Shown here: positions 12,631 through 58,906 of the stretch, one piece after another | How positions within the stretch are numbered: position 1 is the first letter of the stretch | Layout: each line of letters begins with the position of its first letter | NCBI GenBank assembly: GCA_040285825.1 | Contig: JAUPSS010000009.1 | Span: forward strand, 186,001 to 250,000 | Length of the DNA stretch: 64,000 bases | Reading direction: 5' to 3' | Source: Eukaryota sp. TZLM1-RC | Lineage: Eukaryota; Protista; Metamonada: BaSk clade | The notes under the pieces: model-generated | Told to the model about the DNA's origin: nothing | Seen by the model: the letters and a program-made list of their open reading frames with translations, nothing else | Database searches by the model: none | Made by a program: the position numbers and the translations under genes

Positions 12631-14832
12631 TTATGAATAAAACTTGAAGGCTTTATAATCTAGTAATGATCCATCCAACAAATTTCCAAACCCGATAGAG
12701 AAAAGCTCTTCAACAGGAATAGATGTTAATTCAGAGACTACTGATAGTGCTTCACGTACAGTATAACCAAGAACAAAAACAACTTTTCTGAAATCATCAA
12801 TTACCTCCTGAATATCAGTAGGAGTCCCTCGAGTCAAGAAAGAAATAACTAAATTCACACGCAAGACAAACCCAATATCTTGCACAACGAAATTGTCAAC
12901 GCCAAGTTCTTTGAATTTCGCCAATAATCTAAGATTCCATGAATCAGTAGTGGCAAAATCTTGGTTGAACAATGCTAATTGTGCCTCCATATTGAAGAGA
13001 CGCAAGTAGCCAACTTTCAGGCATTTGGGGAGAGAATTAATCTTATTAAATAACAACTTGCGTTTTTTTGAACTCAAAACCTGTTTCGCTTGGCTGATTG
13101 TTCTACTAGAAAGTCCTTGTTTGAAAAATGAACAAGCCTTATTGATTAATTTTTCATCTTCCTGAATTTGGCGATCTCTTCTAGTCAACTGACATCTTTG
13201 GCAGTGGCAAGTAAAACCAGTGCCCTCTGAGAAGTTCTTCAACTGCTTGGCTCGATCATTTAATGGTTGAAGAGTGTCAATATAGGAAATAAACAATTCT
13301 TCACCTTTCTCAATATCAAGTGTAGCATAAACAAACATGAAATCTCCAATAAAGAAATAAGTACAATTAGGAGAGCAGGAATGGTTAAATAGAGACATCT
13401 TTAACCAAAACCCGCAGCCTTTTTCACTTGCTTCTATTCTAAACCAATTAGTTCTCACAGTTTGTTCAATATGACGTATATTTAAGGTATCATGGATTGA
13501 ATTATCAACATTGACTCCTCTTGCAAGTTGGAAAAACTCCTGCTTTTCAGTAGAATCATCAGGCAACAACGAAAGCTTCTGAATCGCTTTCCGAATAACA
13601 ACCTTCTGATCCATGGTGTCAGCGTGAGTTGAGTAAGGGTTAATATCCAACGACAATGGATCAAGACTTTCCTTTTTTGGAATATATGCAGCGAAAGCCT
13701 TCCCGGCCATGACAAGCGTTCCTTTAGGAATGGTTTTGATCGCCCTTATACCCCGTCCCATGGAATGTGTGTTAAATTCTTGAATCAGGGAAGAGAAGAA
13801 ATCTCCATGAGATCTGTCAAGGTAGTCATTGACTTTAGCTTCTTGTGAGAGTTGAGGGTAGTTATACCACCCATTAATCTCCTCTTGAGCCCTTTTTGCC
13901 TTATTGATTAATTGGTACCTTTCATTTTCTCTTATCAATTCCAATTCGTTAGCATGTAGCACTTCTTCAACCCTTCCCATCATAAGGGCAGCTGTAAGTT
14001 TTCTATAAGCCGCCTTCTCATGGGTGGGGTCGATCAAAAGTGCGTTGGAAGAAGCTGAATACGCAGCTTCCCAATGCTCAAGCTTAATATTACAGGCAGC
14101 AAGATTGGAGTTTAGAACAACCAATAAAGACTCAGGAGGAGAAAGTGAAAGGGCAGACGACCACAACTTTTCTGCCCGTTGATAATCCCCCTGGAGAAAC
14201 GCCTTGCTGCCCAACTCTTTAAGCTGGAAGGGATCCTGCGAAAGAGAGGTTTTTTTCCCTTGAGCCATTAACCACTCTTGTTTGCTGTTATAGCGAATGA
14301 TGCCGTGTGGATGATCACATCGAAGTAAAAGTGGATTCGCACGGCTGTCTTGTGCGTTCTTCATGAAAGGTTCTATCACGGCAACATAAGAACCCTTAGG
14401 AAAGTATATTGCGGGATCCTTGTCAGCAGGAACAAGGTTGTAGCTAGATAGTTGCATAAAATGGCTGTTGCTATCACGGATAAGTACATGGGTGGCAGTC
14501 GATCTAAAAGGATCTGCCACAACTTTAGCAAACAAAACATAGCCAGAATGGAGGTAATTCACCTTCTGGACAATTGAGGATAGAGTTATTGGTCTAAGGG
14601 TTTCCAAAGGAGGAATAACAATGTGTCTGATGGCCGAACCAACCGATTGTTTGACTAAAGACGAATGACCTTGGTGATTGGATGACTGTTTTCCCCCTTC
14701 TTCAAAAATATAACGATATACACTTTCAGGAGGAAGAACCCCAGAATAAATAGAAGGAGGACCAGCAGATTGTCTTTGTTGAATGACTTGTTCAAAAGGT
14801 TCCAACAAATCTTTAAACAAAGAATTCTGCAT
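12631..14832 (-). CDS. TPR + SET domain protein (SMYD-like lysine methyltransferase)
   Basis: TPR (LKELGSKAF...SNLAACNIKL), SET (GRGIRA, FNHSCSPNC, GEELFISY) and post-SET CHCQRC. Confidence 0.9.
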   Translation of the reverse strand: MQNSLFKDLLEPFEQVIQQRQSAGPPSIYSGVLPPESVYRYIFEEGGKQSSNHQGHSSLVKQSVGSAIRHIVIPPLETLRPITLSSIVQKVNYLHSGYVLFAKVVADPFRSTATHVLIRDSNSHFMQLSSYNLVPADKDPAIYFPKGSYVAVIEPFMKNAQDSRANPLLLRCDHPHGIIRYNSKQEWLMAQGKKTSLSQDPFQLKELGSKAFLQGDYQRAEKLWSSALSLSPPESLLVVLNSNLAACNIKLEHWEAAYSASSNALLIDPTHEKAAYRKLTAALMMGRVEEVLHANELELIRENERYQLINKAKRAQEEINGWYNYPQLSQEAKVNDYLDRSHGDFFSSLIQEFNTHSMGRGIRAIKTIPKGTLVMAGKAFAAYIPKKESLDPLSLDINPYSTHADTMDQKVVIRKAIQKLSLLPDDSTEKQEFFQLARGVNVDNSIHDTLNIRHIEQTVRTNWFRIEASEKGCGFWLKMSLFNHSCSPNCTYFFIGDFMFVYATLDIEKGEELFISYIDTLQPLNDRAKQLKNFSEGTGFTCHCQRCQLTRRDRQIQEDEKLINKACSFFKQGLSSRTISQAKQVLSSKKRKLLFNKINSLPKCLKVGYLRLFNMEAQLALFNQDFATTDSWNLRLLAKFKELGVDNFVVQDIGFVLRVNLVISFLTRGTPTDIQEVIDDFRKVVFVLGYTVREALSVVSELTSIPVEELFSIGFGNLLDGSLLDYKAFKFYS

Positions 14833-14866
14833 CTGATGTGTGGTTGATAATAAGACTAAATAAAAA

Positions 14867-15030
14867 GGAGTTAATTACAAAAACTTCTTTCAAATCTGCT
14901 ACTGAGAATTTCACACAAAGTGAATATTGAATAAATATCCCTAATAATTGTGTAAACTTCTCAGCACCAAGGGTTAGTATACACTAAACACCTTGGAAAT
15001 ACGTTGATTAAAACAGCTACTGCTGTCTTC
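14867..15030 (-). ncRNA. Candidate Fanzor omega-RNA (fRNA) scaffold
   Basis: Lies between the Fanzor stop codon and the element end. Three stems on the minus strand: AGACAGC/GCUGUUU (15011-15028); CCAAGG..UUAGU-GUAU-ACUAA..CCUUGG (14967-14996); UGCUGAGAA..UACACA..UGUGUG..UUCUCAGUA (14900-14966). Boundaries are inferred. Confidence 0.72.
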
Positions 15031-16883
15031 TTAGACGTCTCACACGCCTTGGCCTTCTGAATGGTTCTGGCCTAGTACCAGTGAAATACTCACTAATTGC
15101 AATCTCCAGCTGGTTTCTGGAGGCTGAGATGTCTCTAGACCAGTTGGTCTGACATCGAGGGCAATCGAACTTAGCGTTATTTACCCTTCCGTCATCATGA
15201 TAGATCTTTCTATGAAAGACCTTACAGCAATTCACATTTGCTGAGGTCATAAACTCGTCCCCGACTTTGACGCTTTCAAAGTGTTTTTTGATTTGTTTGA
15301 GAAATCTCTTTCGGGGGGATTTCACAGATTGACGAGATGGACCACCACCGCCATTGCCGAACCAAACTATAGTGTTTCTTCCTTCAGACAAGCGTTTAAT
15401 TTTGTTAATAAAACTAGTTAGTCTCTTTTGTCTTCGTATGAAGAAATCAAACTTATTTCTTCTCAGCTTTTTTCTTGCACCAAGCTGCAAATTTCCAGAC
15501 ATAATTGAAGCATATTCAGGCTCTTCCTCAGATTCAGGAACATAAGGTAAACTTATTTCAATCAGATACTCTTGGAAGCTCTGAGCGGAATAAGTGTTAG
15601 GAGTTGCTTGAGTGAGAGGAGGGGGGTGATTTAGTCTTCGTTCTTTTGGATTCAGTAGCAGTCCAGAACGTTCAAAAACAGTAGCAGAATTTCGGAAAGA
15701 ACCAGCAGTCCAACCACAAAGATTGCTGTGGTTGGGATCAATGGCTACAAAAAACAAATTTTCATCAGGATCTCTGTAATTGGGCTGTTGTTCCACTGGT
15801 AACCGCGGTCTTCTCTGTGGATTTGCTGTTCTATGGACATTGGATTTTCGTTTCCTTTCAGAGTTGTGAAAATCATAATTTCCAGAGGCTCGCCTGGGCT
15901 CAAATTCCGCTTTACTTGGCCTATTATAAGTTTTTCTTTCCTTCTGGGTAAACGTAAACCGCAAAGAATCACCATTTGAAAAAATGGTATAGTTAATAAA
16001 TTTGGATTTATTAAAATACCGATAAGGGTTGTTCAGAAGCTCTTTGTTTGCATTTAGTTTTGTGAAATAAGCTTCTGCTTCTTTAGTCAAGCTGCAGAAG
16101 CATGGAGACCAACTGGACAGTGGAGAGAGAGTGCCTTTTCATCACATCAGGGCAGTTATCTTCTAAAAAAGATAAAATGTTCAAGCCAGATTGAACGATT
16201 GTTGCAGCAGACTCCATATTGATGGGAAACCGTTCGTTTCTTATTGAATTTTCGAACAAATTTTGACCGCCACCAATATAGGCGTTGGCTGTCATATTGA
16301 GCCAATGGACCAAGATATGCTGGTGTATTTCTTGATACCATTGTAAAATTGACTCATCTGGCTGAATCCCTTGAAGTACACAGTCGGCGTATTTCTTGGG
16401 CCAGGGGCAATTTAGAAACTGAGCACAGCTTTTGAAAAAATTGCGTTTCCAGACGACAGGGCCGTCAGCAAGCAACTGACAAAAGGCTTCTCGCAGTTGG
16501 ATGGCTCGACTGCCAAGAAGAGTGGAAAGACACCAAAATCTACCACCGTCGGCTGAGGTGGTTTCATTCAGCGGTCGCCAGGGCCAAAAGTGCTGAACAA
16601 GGTGTTGTAGCGCTTGGTAAACCAAAGGATGGTTTTCAAATGGCCTCCTTTGTTTAGGCTCACTTTGGCAAACAAAGTCGAAACAGAGGCTCCAGAACTG
16701 GCTTTGAGTAAGCCACATTGAGTGTTCTGGGTATTGGAGCACAAAGAGTCGTGCTAGGTGAGTAGCATGAGCTCCAATACTAGCAAGAACTTGGAACTGG
16801 CGTTCCATTGCTTGTTGTGCCTCTGAGTCGAAGAACTGGTTGACAGACGCTGCCACAGTTGTAGTTTGTAGAACGTTATTCAT
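15017..16883 (-). CDS. Fanzor1 (TnpB-derived RuvC RNA-guided endonuclease), ~620 aa, split by one frameshift near 16083-16135
   Basis: RuvC-I VAIDPN, VWFGNGG, RuvC-II GDEFMTS + CC, CPRC zinc ribbon, RuvC-III WSRDISASRN, RPEPFRR and a basic tail. The upstream ORF (first ATG 16883) overlaps it on the same strand. Confidence 0.88.
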
Positions 16884-17283
16884 GGCAGTCAACACAGAAC
16901 GGAAACAGTCAGAAATGATTGAAAATTTGTTTCCTAAAATTGAAAATTTGTTGAAGTCAATCAATCTTATAGTTGTCAATTCAAAGTAAAGTTAGTTACA
17001 AGTGTTTATTAATGAGACATATGGTTCAAGATTACTTTCTGAATATTTTCCTTTCTTCAGACAAGAACTACATGTTACAAAAGTTGGTGAGTGGAGTTTG
17101 GTTGGGTTGTCATCATTGCCCAGATTCGTAATTGAATTTCATTTCATCACTTACAACATTTCATCACTTACTCTACTACGAACCTTCTCCTACGAATCCT
17201 TGCTTGCAGCTACTACCACTCTTTATGTCGGAAATTGAGAATCACTTTTATTTTAAGTAAAGTTTTTTTTTCTTCCTTCCTAT

Positions 17284-17904
17284 ATGGAATATAACCATGA
17301 ATACAAGATTGATTCTGGAATCAAATCAAATATAAAAGTCTCTACTATGCAGGGGCACTTATTTCGTAGAATGATCAACACAGAACTGTTACTACATTGT
17401 CATAGGTCCCTTCCCTCAAGTTCTTTTGTGGCTCCCTGGACTTCATATGAATCAGTCTGGCTGTCTTCCCTCTCTTCTATTCCTGATGTTCCACACCTTG
17501 TATTAAAGCTACAGAAGAGTCTACTTCCTGCATGTTTTCATCCTCAGTTCCAAAACTTTTCCAAACACTGCTACACGTTTTTCAAGAGAGTCAAATTTCC
17601 CCTTCTTTTCTCCAATCTGAACACTAAGGCCGAGAACAAAGCCTTAGAAGAGCTGATGCGCCTTCGTCATGAGCCTAATGATGCAAGAAACTCTGATGGA
17701 AGACGCTCTGGATCTCGTAAGGTCGCAACTGTTGCACAACCTAACTTTAAAATAAATGCTTTTTCTTCTCATACATGCTTTGGATCAATGTCTACCACCA
17801 ACAAGGCTGCAAATGCAGAATATATTGCAAATATGGCAAGTATTCAATCAAAACTCAGGGCCAACAATTTTTATTCACTTGGAACAACGTACTATTTTAG
17901 CTAG
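17284..17904 (+). CDS. Unassigned ORF inside the MULE element (possible captured host fragment)
   Basis: 206-aa ORF overlapping the transposase remnant; no MULE DDE motifs recognisable. Confidence 0.3.
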   Translation: MEYNHEYKIDSGIKSNIKVSTMQGHLFRRMINTELLLHCHRSLPSSSFVAPWTSYESVWLSSLSSIPDVPHLVLKLQKSLLPACFHPQFQNFSKHCYTFFKRVKFPLLFSNLNTKAENKALEELMRLRHEPNDARNSDGRRSGSRKVATVAQPNFKINAFSSHTCFGSMSTTNKAANAEYIANMASIQSKLRANNFYSLGTTYYFS

Positions 17905-18367
17905 AACGTTCAAAACAAATGACAGCAATGATGGTTTATATGAAGTTGTTGGTTTAAGAAACAGTACTTTTACCGTAGACTTTATCAACAAAAAATGTAG
18001 TTGTAATGGGTGGCAAAATGATGGATACCCATGTACTCCCAGTTTGGCTGTTTATTTAAAGAAGCAAGTTGTGCCATTTGATGGTATAGCTAAAATTCAT
18101 AGTTTAGAGTATTACAAAAAGTCTTTCGAAACAAGTATTCACATTGTTCCTGATCGAAGTGAATGGGAGTTCAAGTCTAAATTTCAAATGGTGGATCCTC
18201 CTAGTGTGCCCAAAGTGGGTGGACGACCACGCAAGAAGCGAATTGATGCCTTTTCTCCACAAAGAAAGAGACAAAGTGTTGCACTGGTACAAGATGATTG
18301 GTTATCCTTGTTCCAAGAAGACAATGTCCCAGAACTCATCGACGTGGACGATGTTTATCCAGACTGA
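17850..18367 (+). pseudogene. MULE transposase C-terminal fragment (degenerate SWIM zinc finger)
   Basis: GLYEV...FTVDFINKKCSCNGWQNDGYPC(TP)...YYKKSFETSI...PP...GRPRKKRI. The SWIM His is lost and no DDE domain is present. Confidence 0.85.
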
Positions 18368-18690
18368 GACATGGAAAATCATTTCGACTTGCTGAATGAC
18401 GATGTGGTATAAACTAGTATTAATAATAAACACTTTGATGACAAATGGTCTTTATCAGCTCTAAAGTGATATAAACTCTTCGTATAGGTGATGTTAACAT
18501 TGATATAACCTCGACTGAAAGTAGCAGTGTCAGGAGAATGGCTGATGGAATATAAGCAAAGGTAGCCCGAAACATGTGCATTTTTGAAATTGCAAAGTGA
18601 AAACGTGAGCATTTTTGTAAATCACCCAAATAAAAAGGGGAGGATTTCCTCTTCATTCTCAGTGCTAGTAATAGATTCAAATATGCATAT

Positions 18691-20055
18691 ATGTCGTTTA
18701 CGACATCTCCTAGACGTGTACGCCGCGTGGCTGTCATAGATGATGCCTCTAATTCATCCCCCTCTGACCGACAAGTTCCTCTATCCGCCCGAACTTTTTC
18801 AACAACATTTTCTGGTAGCGATTCGGTTTCCATACCTGATGCCAGTGTTCGTCTCAATGATTCTGCGTCAGAACCTGGATCTCCTCCACCACAACCACCA
18901 ATTACAACTCCTCTTACCGCACCTTACCTCAATGAAGACGAGGATCTTTCTAGAAACTCATCATCGGCCCTCCTCCAGAAAGTCTCTGCTCTCCGTCGTA
19001 TGTTTCAAGCTGAACGATCAGCTAGATCCTCCTTAGAAGAAGAATTAAAATCAGTTCGTGCACAGTACAGAACATTGGAGAAAACACTCAGTGAAAAGGA
19101 TGAAGTTTGTGTTCGATTGTTTCGAGAAAAGGATCTCTTAGCCGAGAAACTTATAACTCTACAAACAGAAAGAGCCGCAGAATTGGAAACTGATCAATCT
19201 GATTACCACTCAACTGCTCTCCCAGTTAAAAACAAGAAGAAACAAGCAGGTGTGGAACACGCAAGACTATCAAATGACTTGAGAAGACTTGAACAAAAGA
19301 ATGAAGACCTCCAGGACTCTCTTGACACAACATCTTCCATGCTTGATGCTGCTCGTGCCCAAGCCAGGATAATGGAAGAGAAGGTGCGGCAACTGAGTGA
19401 TGCATTAGATGTTAAGGAGGAGGCTTTGGATCAGTCAGAGAAGGAAAAGAAGTCATTGAGAGATCGCTACAGAAGGCTTCAGCTTGAACTTTCTGCTTGT
19501 CTGGAAGAAAGGAATGACCAAGATCAGACCGTAGAGAAGTTGCAAGAAGAAGTTAAGTTAGCCTTGGAGGGACAGGAAGAGCAGAAACAGAAGGTGATTG
19601 AGGTTGAGGGTCAGGTTGGTTCGCTTTCACAGTCATTAAAGCAAAAACAGAAACAAAATCAACTATTAGCTGATCGGTTACTTGATCTGACACTTAAGAC
19701 ACAGAGATACAGGCTGGAAATTCGAAATTTTAGGGTTGTCAGAGTATCCAAGTTGGGATCATCCAATGCGGTCATAAACATCTGTAAGAGCCCGCGAACA
19801 GGTGATGTAATGCTTGAAGTTTCTTTTGGAAGTACTCTGAAGGTCACTCCATTAATGCAGCTCTGTGGGTTTTCCCTGCAGTCTGATACCACTTTTAAAA
19901 TAGAATTTTCTAAGGGTTATTATGAAATTTTTGAGTCAACAGAGGCACCTGAAATAATAGAGATTTTAAATGAGTTTACTAGGTCTTGTGCCGAAGCTGA
20001 GTCTTCCAAAGTAACAGAGGTTGCAGATCAATTTTTAGCCTTTTTGGGTTTGTGA
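18691..20055 (+). CDS. Coiled-coil protein with small C-terminal beta-rich (PH-like?) domain
   Basis: 454-aa ORF with Ser/Pro-rich N-terminus and long heptad region; family not recognised. Confidence 0.75.
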   Translation: MSFTTSPRRVRRVAVIDDASNSSPSDRQVPLSARTFSTTFSGSDSVSIPDASVRLNDSASEPGSPPPQPPITTPLTAPYLNEDEDLSRNSSSALLQKVSALRRMFQAERSARSSLEEELKSVRAQYRTLEKTLSEKDEVCVRLFREKDLLAEKLITLQTERAAELETDQSDYHSTALPVKNKKKQAGVEHARLSNDLRRLEQKNEDLQDSLDTTSSMLDAARAQARIMEEKVRQLSDALDVKEEALDQSEKEKKSLRDRYRRLQLELSACLEERNDQDQTVEKLQEEVKLALEGQEEQKQKVIEVEGQVGSLSQSLKQKQKQNQLLADRLLDLTLKTQRYRLEIRNFRVVRVSKLGSSNAVINICKSPRTGDVMLEVSFGSTLKVTPLMQLCGFSLQSDTTFKIEFSKGYYEIFESTEAPEIIEILNEFTRSCAEAESSKVTEVADQFLAFLGL

Positions 20056-20721: not shown

Positions 20722-23718
20722 ATGACCTCTGCAGATGAATTATCTGATGCTTCCCTGTCCCCACTTTCTTCTTTTAATGAAGGGCGATATATGCAAAATT
20801 ACTCAAAGGAAATTATTGATACAGTACTTGATAGGCTACTGTTACTTCAAAAACATTACTTACTTGATCCTGATGACCCCAAAGACATCACCAAGATCTT
20901 GTTTGGTGAACGACATCGTGTCCTTATATATTTACATGGACTAGACCTAAATGACATTAAAATCTTTTCACGAGAACAAAAATGGACTCTGGACGAGGTT
21001 CGTTCTATAGTTGTACATTGCCTAAGTTTTCTTCATTCCCGCAACCTGATTGTGTCCTTAGACGATAATGCAGCAGTCTTTACCCCTTCTCTCTTTCCCC
21101 CAGAAATAAAGTATATATACAGCTTGGTAGAGAAAGCTATTGTCACTCTTAGGGCCTCTTCATTGGCTTATATGCTCAAAGACAAGCACAAACTCACCTA
21201 CATAATGAGGTTAGCCCCAAACAGTTCAAAGAAAAAACCTTATGAAGAAATGTTTAAAGAGGTTGGTATTGATCCAAATGTGATTTTTGTTTTGAAAATT
21301 AAGCGTTTTTGCCCCAGAATTTGCTATAGAATGATTAATACCGTGTGTCATGAGTTGGAAATTACTGCATCTTCCATTACTTGTAGTTCTAGAGGTGAAA
21401 ATGATGAAGATTTACCCTTAACTCAATTAATCTCCACTCCTCATTCAATTACAGCTAAGGATTGTTGGAGTCAATTGTCAAGTGAGGTGCAATGTTTTGT
21501 AGAAGAAAAGAAGCAAGATTCTAGTAGTGATGACTTTGAGGTTGACTTTGATGGGGGAGTTTCTGACTCTCAGGATGATGTCAACGGCAACTTGCTTGAT
21601 GGTGATTCTCACGTGATTGATGTTAAGGGTCAGCGTTCTGAAATGGTATTTAAAGGTGAAGAGAGTTTGGTTGGCCTTGAGCAATCATTAGATGATTTGA
21701 TTGATGATCACAGTAGTTCAGCACTTTTGGGAACAACAACGGCAACCAATCAATCAAAGCAAGAGGTTGACAGTTTAAAAGAACAAAGTTATCAATCAGA
21801 ATCAGAAATTGATAGTCCAGAGCCAATCAATCAATCAAATCAGGATGTTGACATTTTAAAAGAACAAAGTTATCAATCAGAATCAGAAATTGATAGTGTA
21901 GAGCCAATCAATCAATCAAATCAGGATGTTGACATTTTAAAAGAACAAAGTTATCAATCAGAATCAGAAATTGATAGTCCAGAGCCAATCAATCAATCAA
22001 AGCAAGAGGTTGACAGTTTAAAAGAACAAAGTTCTCAATCAAAATCAGAAATTGATAGTCCAGAGCCAATCAATCAATCAAATCAGGAGGTTGACATTTT
22101 AAAAGAACAAAGTTATCAATCAGAATCAGAAATTGATAGTCCAGAGCCAATCAATCAATCAAATCAGGAGGTTGACATTTTAAAAGAACAAAGTTATCAA
22201 TCAGAATCAGAAATTGATAGTCCAGAGCCAATCAATCAATCAAATCAGGAGGTTGACATTTTAAAAGAACAAAGTTATCAATCAGAATCAGAAATTAATA
22301 GTCCAGAGCCAATCAATCAATCAAATCAGGATGTTGACATTTTAAAAGAACAAAGTTATCAATCAGAATCAGAAATTGATAGTCCAGAGCCAATCAATCA
22401 ATCAAAGCAAGAGGTTGACAGTTTAAAAGAACAAAGTTCTCAATCAAAATCAGAAATTGATAGTCCAGAGCCAATCAATCAATCAAATCAGGAGGTTGAC
22501 ATTTTAAAAGAACAAAGTTATCAATCAGAATCAGAAATTGATAGTCCAGAGCCAATCAATCAATCAAATCAGGAGGTTGACATTTTAAAAGAACAAAGTT
22601 ATCAATCAGAATCAGAAATTGATAGTCCAGAGCCAATCAATCAATCAAATCAGGAGGTTGACATTTTAAAAGAACAAAGTTATCAATCAAAATCAGAAGT
22701 TGATAGTCCAGAGCCAATCAATCAATCAAATCAGGATGTTGACATTTTAAAAGAACAAAGTTCGTCTGGTTATGATTCTGGTTATGATTCTGGTTATGAT
22801 TCTGGTTATGATTCTGGTTATGATTCTTATAGTGGAACTTCACCCAGTCCTTATTCAAGTGACCATGACTTTTCACAAAGTCCAAGATCAAGGTTAATCA
22901 AATCTAGACTATCTGAGACCTCTCAACAATTTCCATCATCAACACAATCAAAAATGATTGATGATTCTCAACCTGATTGCATTCTCTCGTCTTCTTATAG
23001 TTACTATTCCTCCTATAATGATTATTCATATGAATATTACGATTCGTATGACTCTGAGACAAATTCAACCTCTCCTAGTTGCCAAATCATTTCTCCATTG
23101 GCATCACCATCACCCATCTTTGAACCAAAATCTCCTTTCGTTGAAGAGACAAAAGTTGGAGGCAATTCTGTTAGAGAGGTAAAGGAAAAATCTGTTGCTC
23201 CCAAAAAAGATAAAAAGAAGAAGAACATGAATAGAGAACTTGCTGCATTGTCATTTAATTCTGAAGAACTGAGTATTAGTGTACCTGAACAAATATCTAC
23301 AAGAAAGCCTCAAAGACGTACAACCAGAGCTCTAGTTAAAAAAGAATTAAACAAAAATGGTTCAAATTTAAGTGAAAAAAGGAAATTAGCAAAGAAGTCA
23401 ACCATGAAACAGGAATTAGCTTCTCTTTCTTACGAACCTAGATGTCGAAAAAGGTCTTCAAGTTCGACAAAGTCAAATAACCAAGGTAAGGAAATCAAAC
23501 CTAGAAAGAGACTAAAATCTAATCAAAATGGTTCCTCCACCAATGCAATCCTCGGAGATAATTATAACAATGAGGACAGAAGAAGATTAGTGCAGACTAA
23601 AATAGGTGATCATTTTAGGAGAAAGTCTAACCTTTCTGTTTATGAGAAAATTCATTTGGAATTAGCTAGTAGGGGGGTGTCTGTGGAACCTTTGATGAAG
23701 TGTAAAAGAGAATCTTGA
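20722..23718 (+). CDS. Hypothetical low-complexity protein with 27-aa tandem repeats and basic C-terminus
   Basis: Long uninterrupted ORF; first ATG at 20722; acidic repeats, (SGYD)5 and Lys/Arg-rich NLS-like tail. Confidence 0.75.
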   Translation: MTSADELSDASLSPLSSFNEGRYMQNYSKEIIDTVLDRLLLLQKHYLLDPDDPKDITKILFGERHRVLIYLHGLDLNDIKIFSREQKWTLDEVRSIVVHCLSFLHSRNLIVSLDDNAAVFTPSLFPPEIKYIYSLVEKAIVTLRASSLAYMLKDKHKLTYIMRLAPNSSKKKPYEEMFKEVGIDPNVIFVLKIKRFCPRICYRMINTVCHELEITASSITCSSRGENDEDLPLTQLISTPHSITAKDCWSQLSSEVQCFVEEKKQDSSSDDFEVDFDGGVSDSQDDVNGNLLDGDSHVIDVKGQRSEMVFKGEESLVGLEQSLDDLIDDHSSSALLGTTTATNQSKQEVDSLKEQSYQSESEIDSPEPINQSNQDVDILKEQSYQSESEIDSVEPINQSNQDVDILKEQSYQSESEIDSPEPINQSKQEVDSLKEQSSQSKSEIDSPEPINQSNQEVDILKEQSYQSESEIDSPEPINQSNQEVDILKEQSYQSESEIDSPEPINQSNQEVDILKEQSYQSESEINSPEPINQSNQDVDILKEQSYQSESEIDSPEPINQSKQEVDSLKEQSSQSKSEIDSPEPINQSNQEVDILKEQSYQSESEIDSPEPINQSNQEVDILKEQSYQSESEIDSPEPINQSNQEVDILKEQSYQSKSEVDSPEPINQSNQDVDILKEQSSSGYDSGYDSGYDSGYDSGYDSYSGTSPSPYSSDHDFSQSPRSRLIKSRLSETSQQFPSSTQSKMIDDSQPDCILSSSYSYYSSYNDYSYEYYDSYDSETNSTSPSCQIISPLASPSPIFEPKSPFVEETKVGGNSVREVKEKSVAPKKDKKKKNMNRELAALSFNSEELSISVPEQISTRKPQRRTTRALVKKELNKNGSNLSEKRKLAKKSTMKQELASLSYEPRCRKRSSSSTKSNNQGKEIKPRKRLKSNQNGSSTNAILGDNYNNEDRRRLVQTKIGDHFRRKSNLSVYEKIHLELASRGVSVEPLMKCKRES
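21748..22761 (+). repeat. 81-bp coding minisatellite, ~12.5 copies
   Basis: Unit encodes NQS(N/K)Q(E/D)VD(I/S)LKEQS(Y/S)QS(E/K)SEIDSPEPI. Confidence 0.97.
22765..22827 (+). repeat. 12-bp coding repeat (TCTGGTTATGAT)x5
   Basis: Direct reading; encodes SGYD. Confidence 0.95.
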
Positions 23719-24151: not shown

Positions 24152-25788
24152 GACAAACTGTCGTCAATCCTTACCTTTCAACGTTAATCAATAGTCTCAG
24201 AAATAAGGTTGGAGAATTTTTGGGCGCGAGTCTGAACAATACCACCTGGTGTGGAGCAAACATTACACCGCTTGCATTCAATTGATACAATATCACATTC
24301 TGTTCAATAGATTAGACTAAATTCTATTGTTGTGCTTTTCATATAGCTACTCATATGGTTTTCTCTGTCGTGGAGAATCCAATAATTGACTTATAATAAA
24401 TAATAATAAATAATTGATAATACTCACAAAATCCAAACGCACGACGAATTGAATTTTTTGTTCAATTATTTCAACCTTTATTAAACTTACACACTTGACA
24501 AAATTAACTCATAACTAATGGGACGAAATTCATTGAACCAAAATTTCCTCTGCAAAATCTTGATCTGCTTGCTGTCTAGATAAGGCTTCTCTAATTGGAT
24601 TGAAAAACCGAGGTAATCTATCAATAATGGCAAATTGAATTCGAGAGCGCCACAAAAGGATATCAAATCTTTTCATTGTTTTTCCTTGAACCATTTTTTG
24701 GAAATTATTGAAAAGAGTTATTGCATCATGTAATGAAGAACGATAAGTTATCAATTTCCAACAATTCAGAGCTCGACGCAAAATTTTATTAATGAATGTT
24801 GAATCTGAAAAGGAATTTAAATTTGGTTTAAATATGCTGCTACGTGTTGATGGCTTTCAAACGTCAATTAAAATTGCTTTTAGTGTACCCATAGATGGAG
24901 GTTATGGTAATAATTGGAGTGATGCGTTTTTGAAAACTTATTCTGATAAAATTGCTAAGTGTTCAATTTGAAAAGAATTAAATTTAATTAACCAAATTGT
25001 TCCTCTCGTTTTTTGTGTTCATGGGGGTTTTTACACTAAAACAAAAATACTGTTTGACCAATTTGGATGGAATGAGGTAGCAGTTGAAATTAGTTGTATC
25101 ATTTTGAAGAATAGCTTTAAATGCCACAGTGCTTTTAATTATATACTTCAAAAGATAAGAGAAGATCGTCAGTGATGGTGGTACTGCTATTTTAGTTTTC
25201 AAATAGTTTCTCCTCAATTGTTTTTGAAAACAACAACCACAAAACCAGTCACTATCTTACGCATTACAACACAACAACATGTTATAGAGCATGATTCATC
25301 AGCAACTTTGTTTAAACAAAAGCAGGTGACATAATTCAAGAAATAATTGTCCTCGCCTAATAATTAAGTTATACAGCTTAATTTTTAGTGAACTAAAATA
25401 GTATAATAAAATATTATTTAAAAAGGCAGCAAAGACGGGATTATTAATAAAATAGTATTTATTTAATGGTCAGGGATCGTAACGGACTAACATAGTGTTG
25501 TGATGTCTTTGATTCCTTTTGTTTGACAACCAGTTGCATTACCAAAGTTTATCATTGTTTTATCGTAATAATGTTGTAATTTAAGATCTCTCATTTCAAA
25601 AAGATGAACAATTTGAGATTGTGTCATTTGTTAAAACATGTATTAACAGAAACCTATAGAGAGGCTATTCAATATCATAAGTCAGAGTAATGTTGAAATC
25701 TTAGCTTAAATCATAGTTTTATTTAATAATCCCCACATTTAATCAGACACGCTATCAACACTTACACAAGAAAAAACAAAAAACCCGC

Positions 25789-40978: not shown

Positions 40979-41599
40979 TTAGCTCCTCTTCCTAATTCTA
41001 TTACTGCGTCTAGGCTTCTTAGAAGGCGTAGACTCATTGGAGGTACCTTGTCGTCGACTAGTGGTACGTTTACCAATTTTCTTGTTATCCTTACTAAATG
41101 ACTTATAAGCTTCTGAGTGTTTAATCGAATGGAGTGGCTCTTCTGTTGTCTCACCGCCAAACCACTGAACAGTACAGAAACTACCTGAATCAGAGTGGTA
41201 TTCTGAGAGGATTTTCTCTATAACGTGTTTTTCGGAATCGCCTGCAGCGACTGCCTTGAGGAATTCAATGTCCTGTGGATTATCTGCGTTATAGATTTTG
41301 CAATCTTTCTTGGCAGCTTTTAATTCTGTGCCAGTAGTAAGATTCTTCAATAATAAAGTGGATGTGGAAGGAAGGTCAATAACTAAAAATGGTCCATTCC
41401 AAGATCCATGCAATTTATTATTTTGCTTGGTTTTACGTAAGACGTAGTCACCAATATTAAATATTATAAGACACGAATTAGTATTATCTACTGAAGACGG
41501 AGTATTTAATGTTTGGTGACGCTCTGCTTCTTCCCTTTTTTCTTGTAGACGAGTGTTTTTCACTTTGATGTCATCTAATAAAGGGATATTAGTTGGGAT
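40979..41599 (-). CDS. Integrase C-terminus (GPF motif + chromodomain-like)
   Basis: KLHGSWNGPF; HVIEKIL...TVQWFGGETTEEP. Confidence 0.85.
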   Translation of the reverse strand: MPTNIPLLDDIKVKNTRLQEKREEAERHQTLNTPSSVDNTNSCLIIFNIGDYVLRKTKQNNKLHGSWNGPFLVIDLPSTSTLLLKNLTTGTELKAAKKDCKIYNADNPQDIEFLKAVAAGDSEKHVIEKILSEYHSDSGSFCTVQWFGGETTEEPLHSIKHSEAYKSFSKDNKKIGKRTTSRRQGTSNESTPSKKPRRSNRIRKRS

Positions 41600-42249
41600 T
41601 TTTACTGGCCCAATATGAGAAAGGACCTTATTAATCATGTCAAAAGATGCCCAACTTGTCAAAAAACGGCTCCAGTTAAAAGATCAAAAACACCTTCCAC
41701 AGGATCTTTATGGGCAGATGGTCCTTTTGCCAGATTAAATGTCGATTCAATTGGACCCCTAAATTCTGACAACGAAGGAAATAAATATCTATTAGTATTT
41801 GTAGACTCTTTTACTGGATATACAATCTTAGTCCCTCTAAAAGAACTCAATGCCTTAGAAAGCGCAGATGCCTTGATTTGGAATGTTTGCGCTATCTTCG
41901 GCATACCTATGTTAATTCATAGTGATAATGGACCTGAGTTCGCCAATGAGACTTTCAAAATAGTGTGTAACAGATTAGCGATTGAGATGAGTAACTCAAT
42001 TCCCCACTATTCAGAAAGTAATGGACTTGTAGAACGTAAACATAGAGACGTTCTTCAATGCTTAAGGAAACTATTAATAGATTTCAATGATTACGGAAAT
42101 TGGTCTACATACGTACCTATATCCCAACTATTAATAAATTCTACTAAAAGCAGAAAAACTGGTTTTACCCCATACGAACTCATGTTCGGTTCTTCGATTG
42201 AACCAAGAACAGACCCTGCTAATATATTAGGAAATTTATCCAAATTTAT
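41598..42249 (+). other. Inverted integrase core segment
   Basis: Plus strand reads DFYWPNMRKDL..CPTCQ..VDSIGP..HSDNGPEF..NGLVER, opposite to the rest of pol. Confidence 0.92.
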
Positions 42250-45200
42250 ATCGCTTTTGGATAGTTTGTGTAAACTATCGTTTTTGCTAGGGTGACCAGA
42301 TTGAACCAAACCATGTATTAATAGAAGTGCCTGTTTTCTGAGGCTCTTTGGAATCAAAATTATGTTTTTATTATTTTTCCAAATTTGAGTATTTTCATCT
42401 AGAATTGCATTTTCAAATAACGAGTCGTTGTTGTTTTTGGCTATTTGTTGTTCAGATCTTATCTTAGAGAACCAAGAAGAAAAGATAGGTAGGTCTTGGT
42501 GTCTACTTAGAGATGAGATTGATGGGATGTCCGAATCAGAATCATCGTCTAGTGGAGGTATCTCGTAATTTGAAAGTAAAGTATCTGGTATATTTATACT
42601 ACAAATAGAAGGAGCTTCCTCATTTTGATCCAAATCAATATTCCTCGATAACATATCTGCCCAATGGTTGTCTTCACCAGGTTCGTGGACTATGTCAAAG
42701 TCGAATTCAGATAGTATCGGCAGCCATCTCTTTACAATTCTATTTTTCTCTGGGGCTGTAGCCAGGAATGCAATGTTTTTATGGTCTGTGAAAATTGTTA
42801 AATGTCTAGTTAACAAGTAGCTTTCTAAACAACTTTCAGTTAAAATCAAAAGTATTGCATATAATTCTTTTTGTAAGGTGGACCATCTTCTTTGTGTTTC
42901 TGTAAGTAATCTACTATAGAATGACAAAGGTTTTACTTTCCTTTTATTTAGCGGGGTTCCTGCAGGGGAGTAGGGTTCAATTTCTTGCCAAATAACACCT
43001 CCTACTGCTACATCTGAAGCGTCAGTACTTATCAATACTCGCTTGCCCGGAGCTGGTAATTCAAGGGGCATGTGGTTTACTATTAAGTCTTTTATTTGTT
43101 TTAAGTAATCGTCATGCTTGCTAGTCCATTTAATTATTCTGGGTTTTCCTTTAATTAGCTCGTTAATTGGAGCAATTAATTCAGAAATACCTGGAAGCCA
43201 ATCTCTAATATAATTTATGGATCCTACCAATGAGCGAACTTCTTTCACTGTTTTTGGTCTAGGGATTCTCATCAAGGCTTCGATTTTTTTCTTACTTATA
43301 AATCTAGTTTTATCCTGGAAGGTACTTCCTAAAATGTCGATAGGGTGTTTTGATGTTACGAATTTACATTTACGTAAGCCTATATTTACACGTCTATTTC
43401 TGGCGCATTGGAGGACTCTTTGTAATCTCTTATAAAATTCTTCGAATGTCGTTCCAACTATTATGATATCGTCAATGTATATGAAAACGCCATCAATTTG
43501 GAATATTTCCATCATTACGTTTTGAAAAACTGCTGGGATATTCTTTAATCCGAAGCAAGCTCTTTTAAACATAATTGACCTTCCAGGGATTGAGGTTGAT
43601 GTTTTCTCAATGTCCTTTTCAGCTACATTCATCTGCCAGAAAGCTTTTGGTAAATCAGACGTGGCTATGTAATCTGCTCTACTTAAAAACTCTAAAAAAT
43701 CACTAATCCTAGGTAGATTAGGCTCTACTGAAATCGTGTGGGCATTGACTCCATCTTTACCACTAAAGTCTCCCGTTAACCTGGGTTTCTTGCCGTCAGG
43801 ATATATAACTAAGACAATAGGAGAGCTGAAGTTATAATTAGATTCAACTGCATAGCCCATTTCGATCAGTTCATCAAATATTTTGTTTGCTATTTCCATT
43901 TTGCTGGGATTTAACCGTCTAGCAGGCTTGTGTACTATAGCATTCTCATCTCTAAAGGGGATTGTTAGAGGATTACAATCGATTCCTTTTCTATTAGGAG
44001 TTTCACTAAAAACATCGCTGAATAATTTTAGTAGGCTCGTTAAATTCAATTTATTATTACTATCATCTAAATTTATCTCACATCCAGATCTTGCTAATTG
44101 CTCCTCAAAATCAGAAAGACTTGGTGATTGGTTATCTAAGTTCCCAATCGAATGTTGAGCGATCCTGGAGTCGAATTCTGATTCTGCATTTAGCAAAGTG
44201 CGGTGTTCTTTGTCTAATCTAATGAAAAGACCATCATCCGTCTGAAGCCCAAGTGCTTTTAACATGTCTGTCCCTATTAATAATTTGTTCGAACCCGGGA
44301 TTATGGGAAGAGTATGTTTATAGTGAACTTGTTGCGCAATGCTTCCTACGTTGAACGACAGAATACCAGTTGCACTCCCTAGCGATTTTGTGGATACGTT
44401 ATTAGCTGGTAAGAACTTAATAGTATCCTTGCTATTGATTGACATATGGCATTGTTCAGCTAAATCTGCAGTAATAACTGAACAAAACGCAGCCGAATCT
44501 ATAGTCGCAATCATTTTAATATCATTTATTGATATCTCCAGTCTTAGAAATGGAGAACGCTGGGACCTGATGTGGTTTTTACTAACCGTAGAATTAATAT
44601 CAAAAATACTATTGATATCAGAGCTGGTTTGGTGAATTTGTAGAGGAATTAAAAGATTTTGTTGAGCTGTTGGAAAGTTGTTGACTGGGTTTCCTAAATC
44701 GGTAGTTGATTGATTGTGATTGATTGCGTTGATATGTACCCGATTAGGAAAGTTGCCTGTCCTGCTGTTCCGGTTGCTGTTGTTAATCCGTCTGTGAGGA
44801 ACCGTACTCGAACGGGTCGGTTTTGACTCAGTAAGGGATGCGTTTGATGATATGTCCTCTGTTGTGTTTATGTTATGTATAGGTCTGTACTGACCTTTTC
44901 CTTTATGACCTCTAAAACGGCCTCCACGGCCTCTAAATCTGAATCTATGTACACGTCTACCACGGCCACCTCGGCCCCTTTCTACACTGCCTCTACTAGC
45001 AGGCGCCTCCTGTTCTCCTAATCTGAATATTTCTTCTTTGGGAACTCTGCTTCTAGCACAACGAGGGTCCTTGCATTCGAATACAGTGTGGCCAACAGGA
45101 TTGTTACCTTCGACGTTGCTGCAGAATGTACAGAATTTTGATCCTTCTCGTTCATGCTTTTCAGGGATGCATTTGTGTTGAGGGGTTCCTCTTGACTTTC

Positions 45201-47727
45201 CACCTGATCGTCTTGCTCGTTTTGATGGAGCCTGGGCTGATGGTGTTACTCCTCTTGAGTAAGTTTTCATCGCCGTGAGTCTTAAAGGAATATCTTCTTC
45301 ATTAGCCCTGTTCCTTAGTATATCCATTGTGGGCTTGTTTCCTGCTGTGTAACACCAAGCGAGGAAATGTCTTCTCGTTGTCGATATTAAATCGAGTAGA
45401 GTTGTTCTGTTCGGTGAGTCCCACAAGGATTCCCTAGTCCATACTGGGAGGAGTTCGCTCGATATAGCAAAGTTATCCAAACCCATAAGGAAGTACTCGG
45501 CTATTAGTGCGGGAGATATGGTTATCAGCCCACTGCTTCCTCTAATTAAATCGGGGATGGTTAGGTCGGTCATGTAGGTGGTCATTCTCAAGACGTCTCC
45601 AAAATCTTCTACATAACGACCAAACTCGTTGTCAGCCTCATGTCTATTGTGGATTTTTCTCCAGTTTATCCTAGGCTTCATTAGGGCTGTACAAGCCTCA
45701 TGATATGATGTAAATTGTGTTCTTTTTAACAGAAATACCATGACGTCGGCGTCGGTATAATCAACACCGAGTAAACCTTGACTCTGCCATCTAGATAGAA
45801 GGCTAGGGCCAATCATGCTGGATATTCCTGTAGGGCAAGTGCTCATCATCATGCTCCTAAATAAATCATAATGGTGGATTGGGGGTCCGAGCTTATCTGT
45901 TATAGCTGGGTCAATCCTTACCAAAGGCTGTGTTGTGTCCCTGGCGATCTCGTCGCGTATATGTTTGGGGAGATCTTTAATCCTATCTTGGGTTGTTTCT
46001 GCTTGGCCTTCTCCAAATAGCTGGGTAGCTATCATAAAGGCTCTGGTCCAATCTGATTGACCTGGGGCTTCAAAGCTTCTATTAGCTATCTTTCGCCCGT
46101 ACTTATCCCAAGTTTGATATTTTAAAAGAAAAGCTATGATAGACATTTTGTTGATAGGGTCATCAGCGGATAATCGAGGTCTTTTATAGTCGATGTCCTT
46201 AGACCGTGGATCAATCTGTCTATGAAGGCTACTAGCTATACTCATGTCAATAGCTCTTCTTGAGGATTGTAGGTCCTCGATACGCATGGATCTGTCGGAA
46301 GAAGAGTTTCTTACTGAGGGTTGAGGAGGAGCCGTTTCTCCAACGACTGGCCCGTTCAACTCTATGTCTTCTCCAATTTCACATTCCATAGGTTGGGAGG
46401 AAGTTGGTTCTTCCTGAGGAGCAACGTCTTGTCTTGTTACAGGCTCCGGGACGTTCACTGTTGGAACGTGTTCGGGTATGCTGTCAATAGAGCAGACCTT
46501 TATTGGTTGGCTTTTTTCAGAAATTATAGGGGCTACAACAGGCAATTTGGGAAGGTGGAGAGATGTGGATGGATCTCCCGTTACCCATTGTCTAAACTCT
46601 CGTTGTTTCGTGAACGAGTTACCATGTTGTTGGATGTAGTTGTTAGGACGGCTCCTATACGTGGATACAGCTGATCGTTCCGTATGAATGTTATTCAGAG
46701 CGTCTGCATCGAACCAGGGTGTTACTGGTTCAAGCTTGTCTTGTTCACTACTATCCTCCTGCTCCATAAATTCCCTAAAATATGTGGGAGCACTTTCTGT
46801 CAGCTCCGCGTAATTATGGCTTACCGTATCAAAGTTAGGATCAAACCAGGCAGGCAATTTGGATTGTAGGATGTCTTCCGAGTCGGTCCTACTTCTCTGT
46901 TCGATGGAGAGATACCTTATTCTCCTGCCGTATTGATCTAGGAAGGAGGCCTTCCAATCCAATCTATCATTGATGGGAAGAGACATCAATTCATCGATTC
47001 TCTTGTCCATTCCAGAGATTCTGGGGCGGCGTTCTGCGTTACGCCCGAATGTCTCTCTACTCAATTTATCGAGTGCCTTTATGAGTTCATTCCTTTCATT
47101 GAGGGGAATTTCCAATACCTTTTGGGTATCCCCAATCATTCCGAGGGTCTGGAAACCAACGTTTCTGCCTCTTTTTTGAATGTAACTCCATAAAGGGGGA
47201 AGCTGCTCGAACAGACAGAAATCTGTTGGTTCGAGGTAAGCCTCCGCATCCTCTCTTAATAACTTGTAGAACCCCTCAGAAGAGTCGTCTTCTCCCTCCA
47301 TTTCATCTAGTTGAGATTGAATTTCTTCATATTCTCCTAATGGGGAAGACGTGTCTAAGGTGGGATCTCCATCCGTTCCCTTTGAGACAGGTTCTAGAAT
47401 TGGGAGGGGAGAGGGAGCCGGGTCCGTTCTTGTCGCCTCTTCCATTGCTTTGAGGGGAGAGGGAGCCGGGTCCGTTCTCGTAACCTCATCTGTTTCTTTT
47501 TTCCTGAGGGGAGAGGGAGCCGGGTCCGTTCTCGTTACCTCTTCTGTTGTTGAAGATGGAGGGACCTTGTCCACTCTTTCATCTTCTTCTACATTAAGGG
47601 AGGGGGAGGTGGGATCCGGGTCCGTTGCCTCGTTGCCCTCTATATCATGTGTATGTGACGCTGGTACTTGCTGCATATTAAGTGGTGGATTAGAGTCAGA
47701 GATATCTGGTTGGGAGATGTCTGACAT
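42250..47727 (-). CDS. Gag-Pol polyprotein in a single frame (gag, protease, RT, RNase H, start of integrase)
   Basis: CTFC-x10-H-x4-C knuckle, IDSAA protease, DLPKAF and YIDD RT, TDASD RNase H, H..GHP integrase start. Confidence 0.95.
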
Positions 47728-56294: not shown

Positions 56295-58472
56295 TGTGTC
56301 CCTGTTAATAATTTGTTCGAACCGGATTATGGGAAGAGTATGTTTGTATTGTATTTGTTGCCCAATGCGTCCTACGTTGAACGACAGAATACATGTTGCA
56401 ATCTCCAGCGATTTTGTAGATACATTATTTGCAGGTAAAACTGAATAGTATCTTCACTATTGATTGATATATGGCATTGTTCAGCTAAATTTGCAGTAAT
56501 AGCTGAACAAAAAGCAGCCGATCAATAGTCGCAATCATTTTAATATCTTTTATTGATATGTCCAGTCTTTGGTTTTCACTTAATCTAGAATAAATAATAA
56601 AAAATACTGTTGATATCAGAGCTGGTTTGGTGAAATTGTGGAGGAATTACAAGTTTTTGTTGGGATGTTGTTTAGTTGTTGACTAGGTTTCCGAAGTCGG
56701 CTGTTGATTAATTTTGATTGATTGCGTTAATGTATACTCGATTTGGAAAGTTGCCTGTCGTGTTATTCCTGTTGCCGTGGATGATCCGTCTGTGAAAACT
56801 GTGCTCGAACAAACCGGTTTGATCTTAGTAGGGAATGAATTTCTAATAATAAAAAGAATTTTGGTGTTATACATACTGTATTCTCCCGATTAGAGCACAC
56901 CCCCCTTCCGATTAGAGCACCTCCCCAAGGGGTGCTCTATAACAGAGCGCTCTTGAATAGAGCACCCTCATACTTGACTAAAATCAACTGCAGTCAATAG
57001 TATTTGTTAAACTGTATTTCTAACAACTTAGCAAATTACAATAAATACTGGAAAGTGGATGAACAATTTGATATTCTATTCCTTCTTCTCACATGGTTTC
57101 TAGAAATCATCGTCGAAGTCCGGATTCTCCTTCCCAACCAATCCGTCGTCCCAAAAAAATGGCTCGCTTATCTGTTTCAATGGGCTTCAAACAAAAGGTT
57201 CTGTCAGACCTTGAAATCCTCGGAAAAACTCCTACCTTACAACGATACAAATCTATCTCTTCTCGTCAACTTAAAGACTGGCTTCGGGACGAAGAGGCCA
57301 TCTTTCTGTCTGATCCCAAGGCTTTCAGACTCTCTGGGGCCGGAATGAAGCCACTAAGTTTTTTTAAAAAAGTAATTTGGATTATAATGTGGTATCCTCT
57401 CGAATAGAGCACCCCTGAATAGAGCCTCTAATTGGGTGAAGGGGTGCTCTAAAATAGAGCCTGGTGCTCTAATCGGGAGAATACAGTAATATTGATCTCT
57501 GTCTTTATGTCCTCTAAAATGGCCTCCACAGCCTCTATGTCTAAACCTATTTACACCCTTACTACGGCGACCTTGGGTCCTTTTTACACTGTCTCTATCA
57601 GCAGGCTCATCGAATTGTCCAATTTTGAGTCTCTGCTCCTTTGGGACTTTACTTCTAGCACAATGAGGCCCTTTACGTTCAATTACATTATGACCGATGG
57701 GATTGTTGCCTTCGACGTTGCGACGGAAGGTACAGAATTTCGAGCCATCTCGAATGTGTCTTTCGGGGATGTATCTATGTTGAGGAGTTCCTTTAAACTG
57801 TCCTCTTGTGCGCCTTGCTCGTTTCGTTGGAACTTGAGTTGATGAAATTACTCCTCTTGAGTAAATTCTCATCGCTGTTAGTCTCAAGGGTATGTCCTCT
57901 TTATTAGCTCTGTTCCTAAATATGTCCATTGTGGGTTTGTTTCCTGCAGTAAACATGCTTGGATTCCAGTTTTGAGAAGGGGGAGAGAACGGAGTCTGTT
58001 TTCGTTACCTCCGGTGAGAAAACTTATTTTCTGAGTAGAGAGGGAGCCATGTCCGTTCTCCTAGTCTCCTTAACCGAATTTGGATAAGCAAAAGAGGTGG
58101 TATTCGTGCCTGTTCCTTTGACATCTATTTTTGCAGAAGGTACCTCTTTTTTTTCGTTTTTTCGACTACCTTTTTAATGAAGGAGGAGGTGGGAACCGCG
58201 TTTGTTACCTCTTTGTTTTTATAATTGTGTTGTTGTTGTTGCTTCATGCTGCATGCTGTCAGAAGTATAAGAATCAGAGTTATTTTTCTGAAAGATGTCT
58301 GACATTCTGCTGATATCTGATGAATGGTACTGTAATGCTGGCTAAGCTATAGGCATATACGGTATACCGTTTGACTTAAAAATGGCCAATAATTGATGTT
58401 GCTTTAAGTCGAGAAGTCAAGATAAAGATGATTTATTTTTATTCATCTTATATAAGCCTTAGGGCGCAAACA
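56295..58472 (-). mobile_element. Decayed 5' part of a 79-bp-LTR family element (5' LTR 58397-58472, deleted gag, protease)
   Basis: LTR and leader homologous to 47780-47883; TAGNKPTMD...EDIPLRLTAM gag; protease-homologous DNA at 56295-56570. Confidence 0.9.
56876..57486 (+). mobile_element. Non-autonomous pogo/Tc2-like (Tc1-mariner) element nested in the retroelement
   Basis: TA TSD, perfect 23-bp TIR CTGTATTCTCCCGATTAGAGCAC, many TAGAGC(AC) subterminal repeats. ORF 57093-57407 resembles a transposase N-terminal HTH (FKQKV...QLKDW...RLSGAG.KP). Confidence 0.92.
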
Positions 58473-58906
58473 ATAGAATATATAAAGAATCGATTGTAGA
58501 AAAGTGATAATTATTCATTAAAAATGAGTTGATACAAATATGAGTGTACTTGTGGAAGTTATGGGCAAACTTGCTCATATGATCCAAATGCTGAATTTAA
58601 AGAATGGTATGTATTGATCCTACCTAGTATTGCTCACAAGGTTATTGTCGTTGTGGAGGTGTTGCACCTTGTGATGGATAGTTAACATTAAATAAAATTG
58701 AACATGACGATTATTGTGGTATGGACTAGTGTGGTTGTCTATGCTAAAATCCTCATGTGATGGTCTTGGCTGGTTAGTATCAGACATAACTGGAGAAATC
58801 TAAGGAGATTTATTACCAAGAGGAATTGCATTCTCTCTTCTTGAACTAATAGGCGGAATACTAATAAACTATATAAATAAACTATAAATACTATTCAAGA
58901 CTAACA

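Follow-up and report, generated by a model that had tools for sequence, protein, structure and literature searches.

The omega-RNA of SpuFz1 (PMC10432273; Saito 2023; PDB 8GKH) is the reference for the locus described here, and the two systems have the Fanzor1 fold and the D-E-D triad in common. In both, the scaffold lies just after the stop codon and consists of unpaired 5′ bases, stem 1, a short linker and stem 2 with a conserved base and a variable tip, followed by a variable flank. They differ in scaffold length (75 nt in SpuFz1 versus ~100–160 nt here), in the terminal inverted repeats, which SpuFz1 has and our element lacks, in the start of the duplication (inside the scaffold in SpuFz1, after it here), and in the TAM, which is CATA in SpuFz1 and predicted to be TTG or TATTG here. 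Fanzor1 cleavage falls 14–21 nt past the TAM.

In the available portions of the report by Bao and Jurka (2013, PMC3627910), the non-autonomous Chlamydomonas Fanzor1 elements CRe-1/2/3 lack a transposase, keep their 3′ end intact, are frequently truncated at the 5′ end and can carry internal deletions. Their duplications vary in length and begin immediately behind a T-rich motif, and some of their 5′ junctions contain additional sequence. All of these traits recur in our element. The motif is TTTT in CRe-1/2/3 versus TTG here, and the duplications measure 7–19 nt versus 4–13 nt. CRe-1/2/3 are linked to Helitron2, whereas our element is likened to them by the pattern of its ends; those portions of the report contain no description of docking before host start codons, and the Fanzor gene here is intronless. 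They also state that CRe-1 has target site duplications on truncated copies and not on full-length ones, and that Fanzor-less Helitrons almost never have them. By analogy, the way our element would work resembles that of CRe-1/2/3.

According to the same portions of PMC3627910, MCi-2 of Mucor likewise combines Fanzor1, no terminal inverted repeats, differing 5′ regions and target duplications, but its duplications are of a fixed pattern (11–12 bp) and it carries a partial Crypton transposase. The MuDR-borne Fanzor1 elements described there (ROr-4, PBl-3, MCi-4) are resembled by the window copy alone, with inverted repeats and a 9-bp duplication around Fanzor; they differ in that the window case is a nested insertion and its siblings are without MuDR ends. 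Restorative homing of IS605 TnpB (reviewed in PMC13565253) is similar in that the guide is the 3′ flank and the TAM is the 5′ insertion motif; here, in contrast, there is no TnpA, duplications and truncations are present, and homing is something that we infer.

The omega-RNA at our locus is in itself ordinary. What is new is docking at start codons and a presumed homing scar that can be tested; the rest is a Fanzor1 omega-RNA of a known sort.

The locus and its Fanzor1 protein

The window, that is, the whole stretch of DNA analysed (64,000 nt), comes from contig JAUPSS010000009 of Eukaryota sp. TZLM1-RC and is identical in sequence to our locus L004. We take strain TZLM1-RC to be Skoliomonas litria. 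S. litria is a free-living metamonad (PMC11316075). The coordinates of the features are given in Table 1.

Table 1. Features of the Fanzor1 element and its surroundings, in window positions
Feature	Position	Strand	Remark
Host TPR/SET gene	12631–14832	-	ATG 70 nt downstream of scaffold end, same strand
Left 9-bp duplication of Mutator-like element	14858–14866	+	Partner 18628–18636
Mutator-like remnant, outer left end	14867–14895	+	The earlier "TIR"; resumes at 17574
Predicted 15-nt guide of window copy	14887–14901	-	Flank; length borrowed from SpuFz1; Mutator subterminal sequence
3′ copy of 6-nt target duplication, TAGCAG	14896–14901	-	
Core omega-RNA scaffold, predicted (~105 nt)	14902–15006	-	14902 is the element 3′ end
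Stem 2	14902–14964	-	Base CUGAG/CUCAG; conserved length 63 nt
Stem 1 (CCAAGG/CCUUGG hairpin)	14967–14996	-	Closing-pair probability 0.97–1.0
Unpaired 5′ motif	14997–15004	-	AYGUWUU in five families
Hairpin over Fanzor stop codon	15010–15029	-	Stop 15019–15017; only in the window's family
Fanzor1 gene	15017–16883	-	D-E-D triad intact; frameshifted in CT run 16120–16133
Retained 5′ part of Fanzor element	16884–17570	-	Siblings reach up to ~0.8 kb further
5′ copy of 6-nt duplication	17568–17573	-	Final 3 nt shared as microhomology with truncated element (starts 17570)
TAM position of window insertion	17574–17576	-	GTG (family consensus TTG)
Mutator-like remnant, remainder	17574–18627	+	SWIM zinc-finger fragment 17756–18367 and right end

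The window Fanzor consists of two pieces, and protein searches were made with its C-terminal piece and with the in-frame sibling P0032. The protein has many relatives at 89–99% identity in the same genome, and more distant families occur there and in GEM-RC1 and RCL. Insertion and position counts refer to 14 loci in all, picked via protein hits, and the copy-to-copy comparison of boundaries to eight siblings set against the window. Rfam gave no relevant match, and viral contigs and JGI metagenome contigs held no relatives.

The family profile finds SpuFz1 at E 7e-59, and also PpFz1 and GtFz1, with Fanzor2 and TnpB far behind. The model of P0032 has the Fanzor1 fold (pLDDT 85.7; Foldseek E 1e-14 to 1e-10), with catalytic residues D383, E543 and D584 and the hallmarks of a rearranged RuvC, in which E lies just before the zinc finger, and a C4 zinc finger. 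The window copy does not hold an intact frame: compared with the in-frame copies P0032 and P0002, its CT run lacks 2 nt. A long-read error was rejected, since the loss is also present in an Illumina contig that has no gap at the site. The annotated "22-nt intron" is a rescue of the frameshift by the gene caller and not a real intron, because relatives retain the motif that it would excise and two copies have an open frame across it. Being frameshifted, the window copy probably supplies RNA only. The identical frameshift occurs in six of the eight compared copies, so that within this sample the non-coding lineage outnumbers in-frame copies.

Element boundary and nested Mutator-like remnant

The preliminary description proposed to look for the point at which conservation between copies ends, and this point is sharp. 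As far as 14902, 7–8 of the 8 siblings agree with the window at each position; past it, agreement falls to a background of 0–5 of 8, which places the scaffold end at 14902. An Illumina contig departs from the window at exactly this position, into the flank of another copy. The sequence directly 3′ of the scaffold is variable, with a different flank in every copy; in the window copy the predicted guide starts at 14901 and reads UAGCAGAUUUGAAAG.

It had been proposed that a ~67-nt stem runs on into the element's own inverted repeat. The stem itself stands, whereas its continuation is contradicted by the end of the sibling match, and the outer 2 bp of the stem as folded (14966–14900) are chance pairing with the flank. 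Both guides suggested on that basis are displaced. A guide made of the target duplication and flank would begin 36 nt beyond the scaffold end, past the 14–15-nt guides of Fanzor1 (PMC10432273), and its supposed TAM context CTCCCC is Mutator flank. The inverted repeat as guide is off by six bases (14895 versus 14901), and a fixed guide against element ends disagrees with flanks that differ per copy, only the window copy sitting in a Mutator repeat.

The 9-bp duplication is real, as are the imperfect inverted termini (14867 and 18627), but they belong to another element. When the Fanzor part is taken out, a 1.1-kb Mutator-like remnant with a SWIM fragment is left, and the end-anchored global alignment of the Mutator ends rises from 4.6 to 12.4, a score reached in 1 of 2000 shuffles; in local alignment the ends do not exceed shuffles. 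Since a separate 6-nt duplication brackets the Fanzor part and its excision improves the Mutator ends, the inverted repeats and 9-bp duplication are those of the host element. The window copy is a Fanzor insertion nested in a Mutator remnant, and its guide reads Mutator sequence by accident, because the copy sits in the end of that remnant.

The surrounding inverted termini, 9-bp duplication and SWIM fragment, and the precedent of MuDR-borne Fanzor1, would also suit a Mutator element that carries Fanzor as cargo, with the scaffold running into its inverted repeat and a guide formed by the duplication and flank or by the repeat. This is scarcely credible given the duplication proper to the Fanzor part, the better match of the Mutator ends after its removal, and the siblings, in which Mutator sequence at either end was found in 0 of 8, as were shared MuDR inverted repeats or fixed 9-bp duplications.

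Without both nested elements, the SET gene and a divergent coiled-coil gene would be ~90 bp apart (14832–14858 and 18636–18691), so that the Mutator remnant occupies a bidirectional promoter of very small size. The gaps between divergent genes appear to be comparably short at L001 17312, L010 8246 and L012 8416.

Scaffold fold across families

The three stems that had been noted on the minus strand after the stop codon are present, and their fold (MFE −51.3) is better than that of shuffled sequences (z −4.59, 0 of 200 shuffles as good). The plus strand folds more weakly (MFE −39.5, z −4.11). The hairpin over the stop codon was seen in the window's family but in none of the other four, and therefore may lie outside the core scaffold.

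Five families from three species, at 37–51% protein identity to P0032, have one layout with differing sequence: the unpaired AYGUWUU leads directly into stem 1, and a linker a few bases long separates this from stem 2, which closes on a terminal CAG. Stem 1 keeps its position across families while its length and sequence vary; the base of stem 2 is of the CUGUG/CACAG or UUGUG/CACAG type in the other families, and its distal part varies. Between families the sequence changes with pairing maintained, as judged from an alignment built by anchors rather than a formal covariation test, and the layout occurs in ≤1% of shuffles per family. No compensatory changes were found within the window's family. 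The 3′ end of family 2 was mapped from three copies, and those of family 3, GEM and RCL were set from motif and fold alone.

The original omega-RNA reading and its minus-strand orientation are thus supported by the Fanzor1 gene upstream, the conserved scaffold, the paired changes between families, and the variable flank past a sharp end. Judging from these sequence features, the scaffold (15006–14902, minus strand) together with ~15 nt of flank after 14902 is very probably a Fanzor1 omega-RNA with its guide.

Two other roles for the hairpins were weighed. They could be end signals at the DNA level for a rolling-circle helper, with no guide RNA: both strands fold better than shuffles, and Helitron ends bear hairpins. 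However, the sense fold is lower than the antisense fold in 5 of 5 families and uses G-U pairs, and layout and position match characterised Fanzor1 RNAs, so that we regard this role as extremely improbable. The scaffold might instead have a second function as a spliceosomal intron (GTATT...CAG), in which case splicing it out would restore the host mRNA downstream, in the manner of IStrons. Its 5′ motif is similar to the donor sites of the host, CAG terminates the scaffold in all five families, and the element precedes start codons. Eight clear host introns, in contrast, are 28–34 nt long with T in position −9 and A in position −7. In the three S. litria families, neither base is found at the scaffold end, the scaffolds measure ~100–160 nt, and the CAG is paired in a stem; the intron role is therefore very improbable. 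The eight introns, in which the branch A is always 7 nt away from the 3′ end, lie in L001, L003, L007, L011 and L013.

In the third family (L002 18025–18190, minus strand) the scaffold reaches 158 nt and has an additional long hairpin within stem 2. A decayed fragment of ~200 bp at L009 1892–2095 (minus strand) consists of just the ORF tail and scaffold of the window's family.

Insertion scars, start codons and proposed mechanism

Copies of the element have a fixed 3′ end and 5′ truncations at varying points, and some have internal deletions, for which loss of introns was rejected as the boundaries are not GT-AG. No transposase was found in any copy, the upstream ORFs have no Pfam hit, and no RepHel was found in 13 loci. 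At independently mapped 5′ junctions we found duplications of 10, 13, 8, 6 and 9 nt (chance 1e-6 to 6e-3 each); as a set, the motifs before these five are TTG three times, TTA in one sibling and GTG in the window copy. In a uniform scan, 9 of 14 loci (1.6 expected) had, on the upstream side, a TTG joined to 4 nt or more of the flank sequence; several of the nine hits are just 4–5 nt long, and some of these short hits will be due to chance. Family 2 has TATTG in three of three copies. These motifs suggest that TTG is likely the TAM.

Overall, the duplications are 4–13 nt long, and every one is shorter than the distance to the Fanzor1 cut positions (+14 to +21). The 5′ junctions contain microhomology, filler and templated repeats. 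No convincing duplication was found at GEM, L005, L008, L007 and L013, the hits at L007 and L013 being distant 4-mers. The GEM-RC1 candidate was put down to chance and sits within an intact Spt16 gene; candidates at L006a and L007 were not relied on, as the surrounding repeat continues beyond them.

At L001 9055–9086, TTG and the duplication occur twice in tandem (10 and 9 nt) at a single 5′ junction, which could reflect repeated cut and repair or a templated insertion. L006 1–14648 holds two divergent Fanzor copies with identical 3′ flank in a multi-kb inverted duplication with a 5.4-kb palindrome, either a true rearrangement or an assembly artefact.

In 13 of the 14 loci, the gene called next after the element shares its strand. 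A same-strand host ATG lies <100 nt downstream of the element end in 11 of the 14 (1–86 nt, distances that rest on automatic gene calls), as it does for 5% of random non-genic positions (p ~1e-12). The median distance to the same-strand gene start is ~40 nt, and fusion exactly at the ATG is seen in only 1 of 14 loci. For the control, LINE ends in these loci, a start codon is this close in 3 of 13 cases (Fisher p 0.007).

The flanks have no likeness over the first 6 nt (p 0.21) and a slight one over 15 nt (p 0.01); being unalike, they indicate that new sites are not picked by one master guide. With the same-strand docking and no transposase found in any copy, this agrees with a self-propagating element that would take its guides from host mRNA 5′ ends by template switch or ligation, cut the matching TTG-preceded gene start and be copied in. 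However, the same bias could arise if a helper targets such sites or if selection acts in a compact genome; a precedent was not found in the literature searched, and we consider such capture improbable.

We prefer a model with three parts, an omega-RNA scaffold, an element placed by a helper, and incomplete homing by Fanzor, and assign it, from sequence comparison, a probability of roughly 0.6. A postulated helper encoded elsewhere, for which a rolling-circle helper or the RLE LINE would be candidates at first entry, would put the element at TTG sites near gene starts. Because the window copy is frameshifted, its RNA would need protein from in-frame siblings, and a sibling Fanzor loaded with it would probably cut the empty allele behind a TTG-type TAM. 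Repair would then restore the element by copying that starts at its 3′ end; this would often halt early, with closure by microhomology or templated end-joining, so that the 3′ end is constant, the 5′ truncation varies and a short duplication directly follows the TAM. The duplications expected from this course of events are shorter than the cut distance and start right after the TAM, as observed. That helper placement and homing with early-stopped copying explain the scars is, in our estimate, an even bet. Fanzor cuts in such duplications were raised as a speculation by Craig (PMC10288648); the closest precedent, CrFNuc-1, was without cleavage in vitro (PMC10530073).

An active RLE LINE in the same genome yields duplications of similar size, which counts against this model. 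This RLE non-LTR retrotransposon could use a TTG nick to reverse-transcribe the Fanzor RNA, beginning at its scaffold end, which would make the element a SINE-like passenger with no Fanzor cutting. The 5′-truncated LINE is abundant in the same loci, with duplications of 8–13 nt, and two Fanzor copies are joined at the 5′ side to same-strand LINE fragments, one via 6 nt of microhomology. We nevertheless find the passenger unlikely: the LINE ends in an A-rich tail whereas Fanzor copies have no tail and no 3′ sequence in common with it, three LINE duplications follow TCA, TGG and TGA, the internal deletions are not introns of the GT-AG type, and LINE ends show the lower frequency near start codons given above. 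The LINE itself lies at L007 17700–19281, with copies in most loci and at 24477–24782 of the window; in L013 and L006 it abuts Fanzor copies at their 5′ end.

If the preferred model is right, it bears on the role of Fanzor within its own genome, as the insertion scars may record the cutter at work. Homing predicts duplications that are limited by the cut distance and found just in truncated copies, and the same logic would account for the CRe-1 pattern left unexplained in 2013. Since dozens of copies are 95–99% identical and each has a predicted guide, TAM and scar, homing can be tested from one genome. The lineage also yields in-frame Fanzor1 proteins of 590–660 aa with a short predicted TAM (TTG or TATTG), and the five natural scaffold variants show which parts can be trimmed. 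It is a good deal more doubtful that this is a Fanzor1 lineage without transposase that spreads at gene starts through its own RNA-guided cuts, perhaps with guides from host 5′ ends; if so, each guide would target the promoter or start codon of the adjoining gene, and the scars would be a fossil record of native Fanzor activity.

Elsewhere in the window, an 81-nt unit forms a tandem array at 21662–22852 within an ORF of 1002 aa, and ORFs like those of Ty3/Gypsy LTR retrotransposons, one long and one fragmented, were recognised from translations only at 40979–47727 and 57354–61604.
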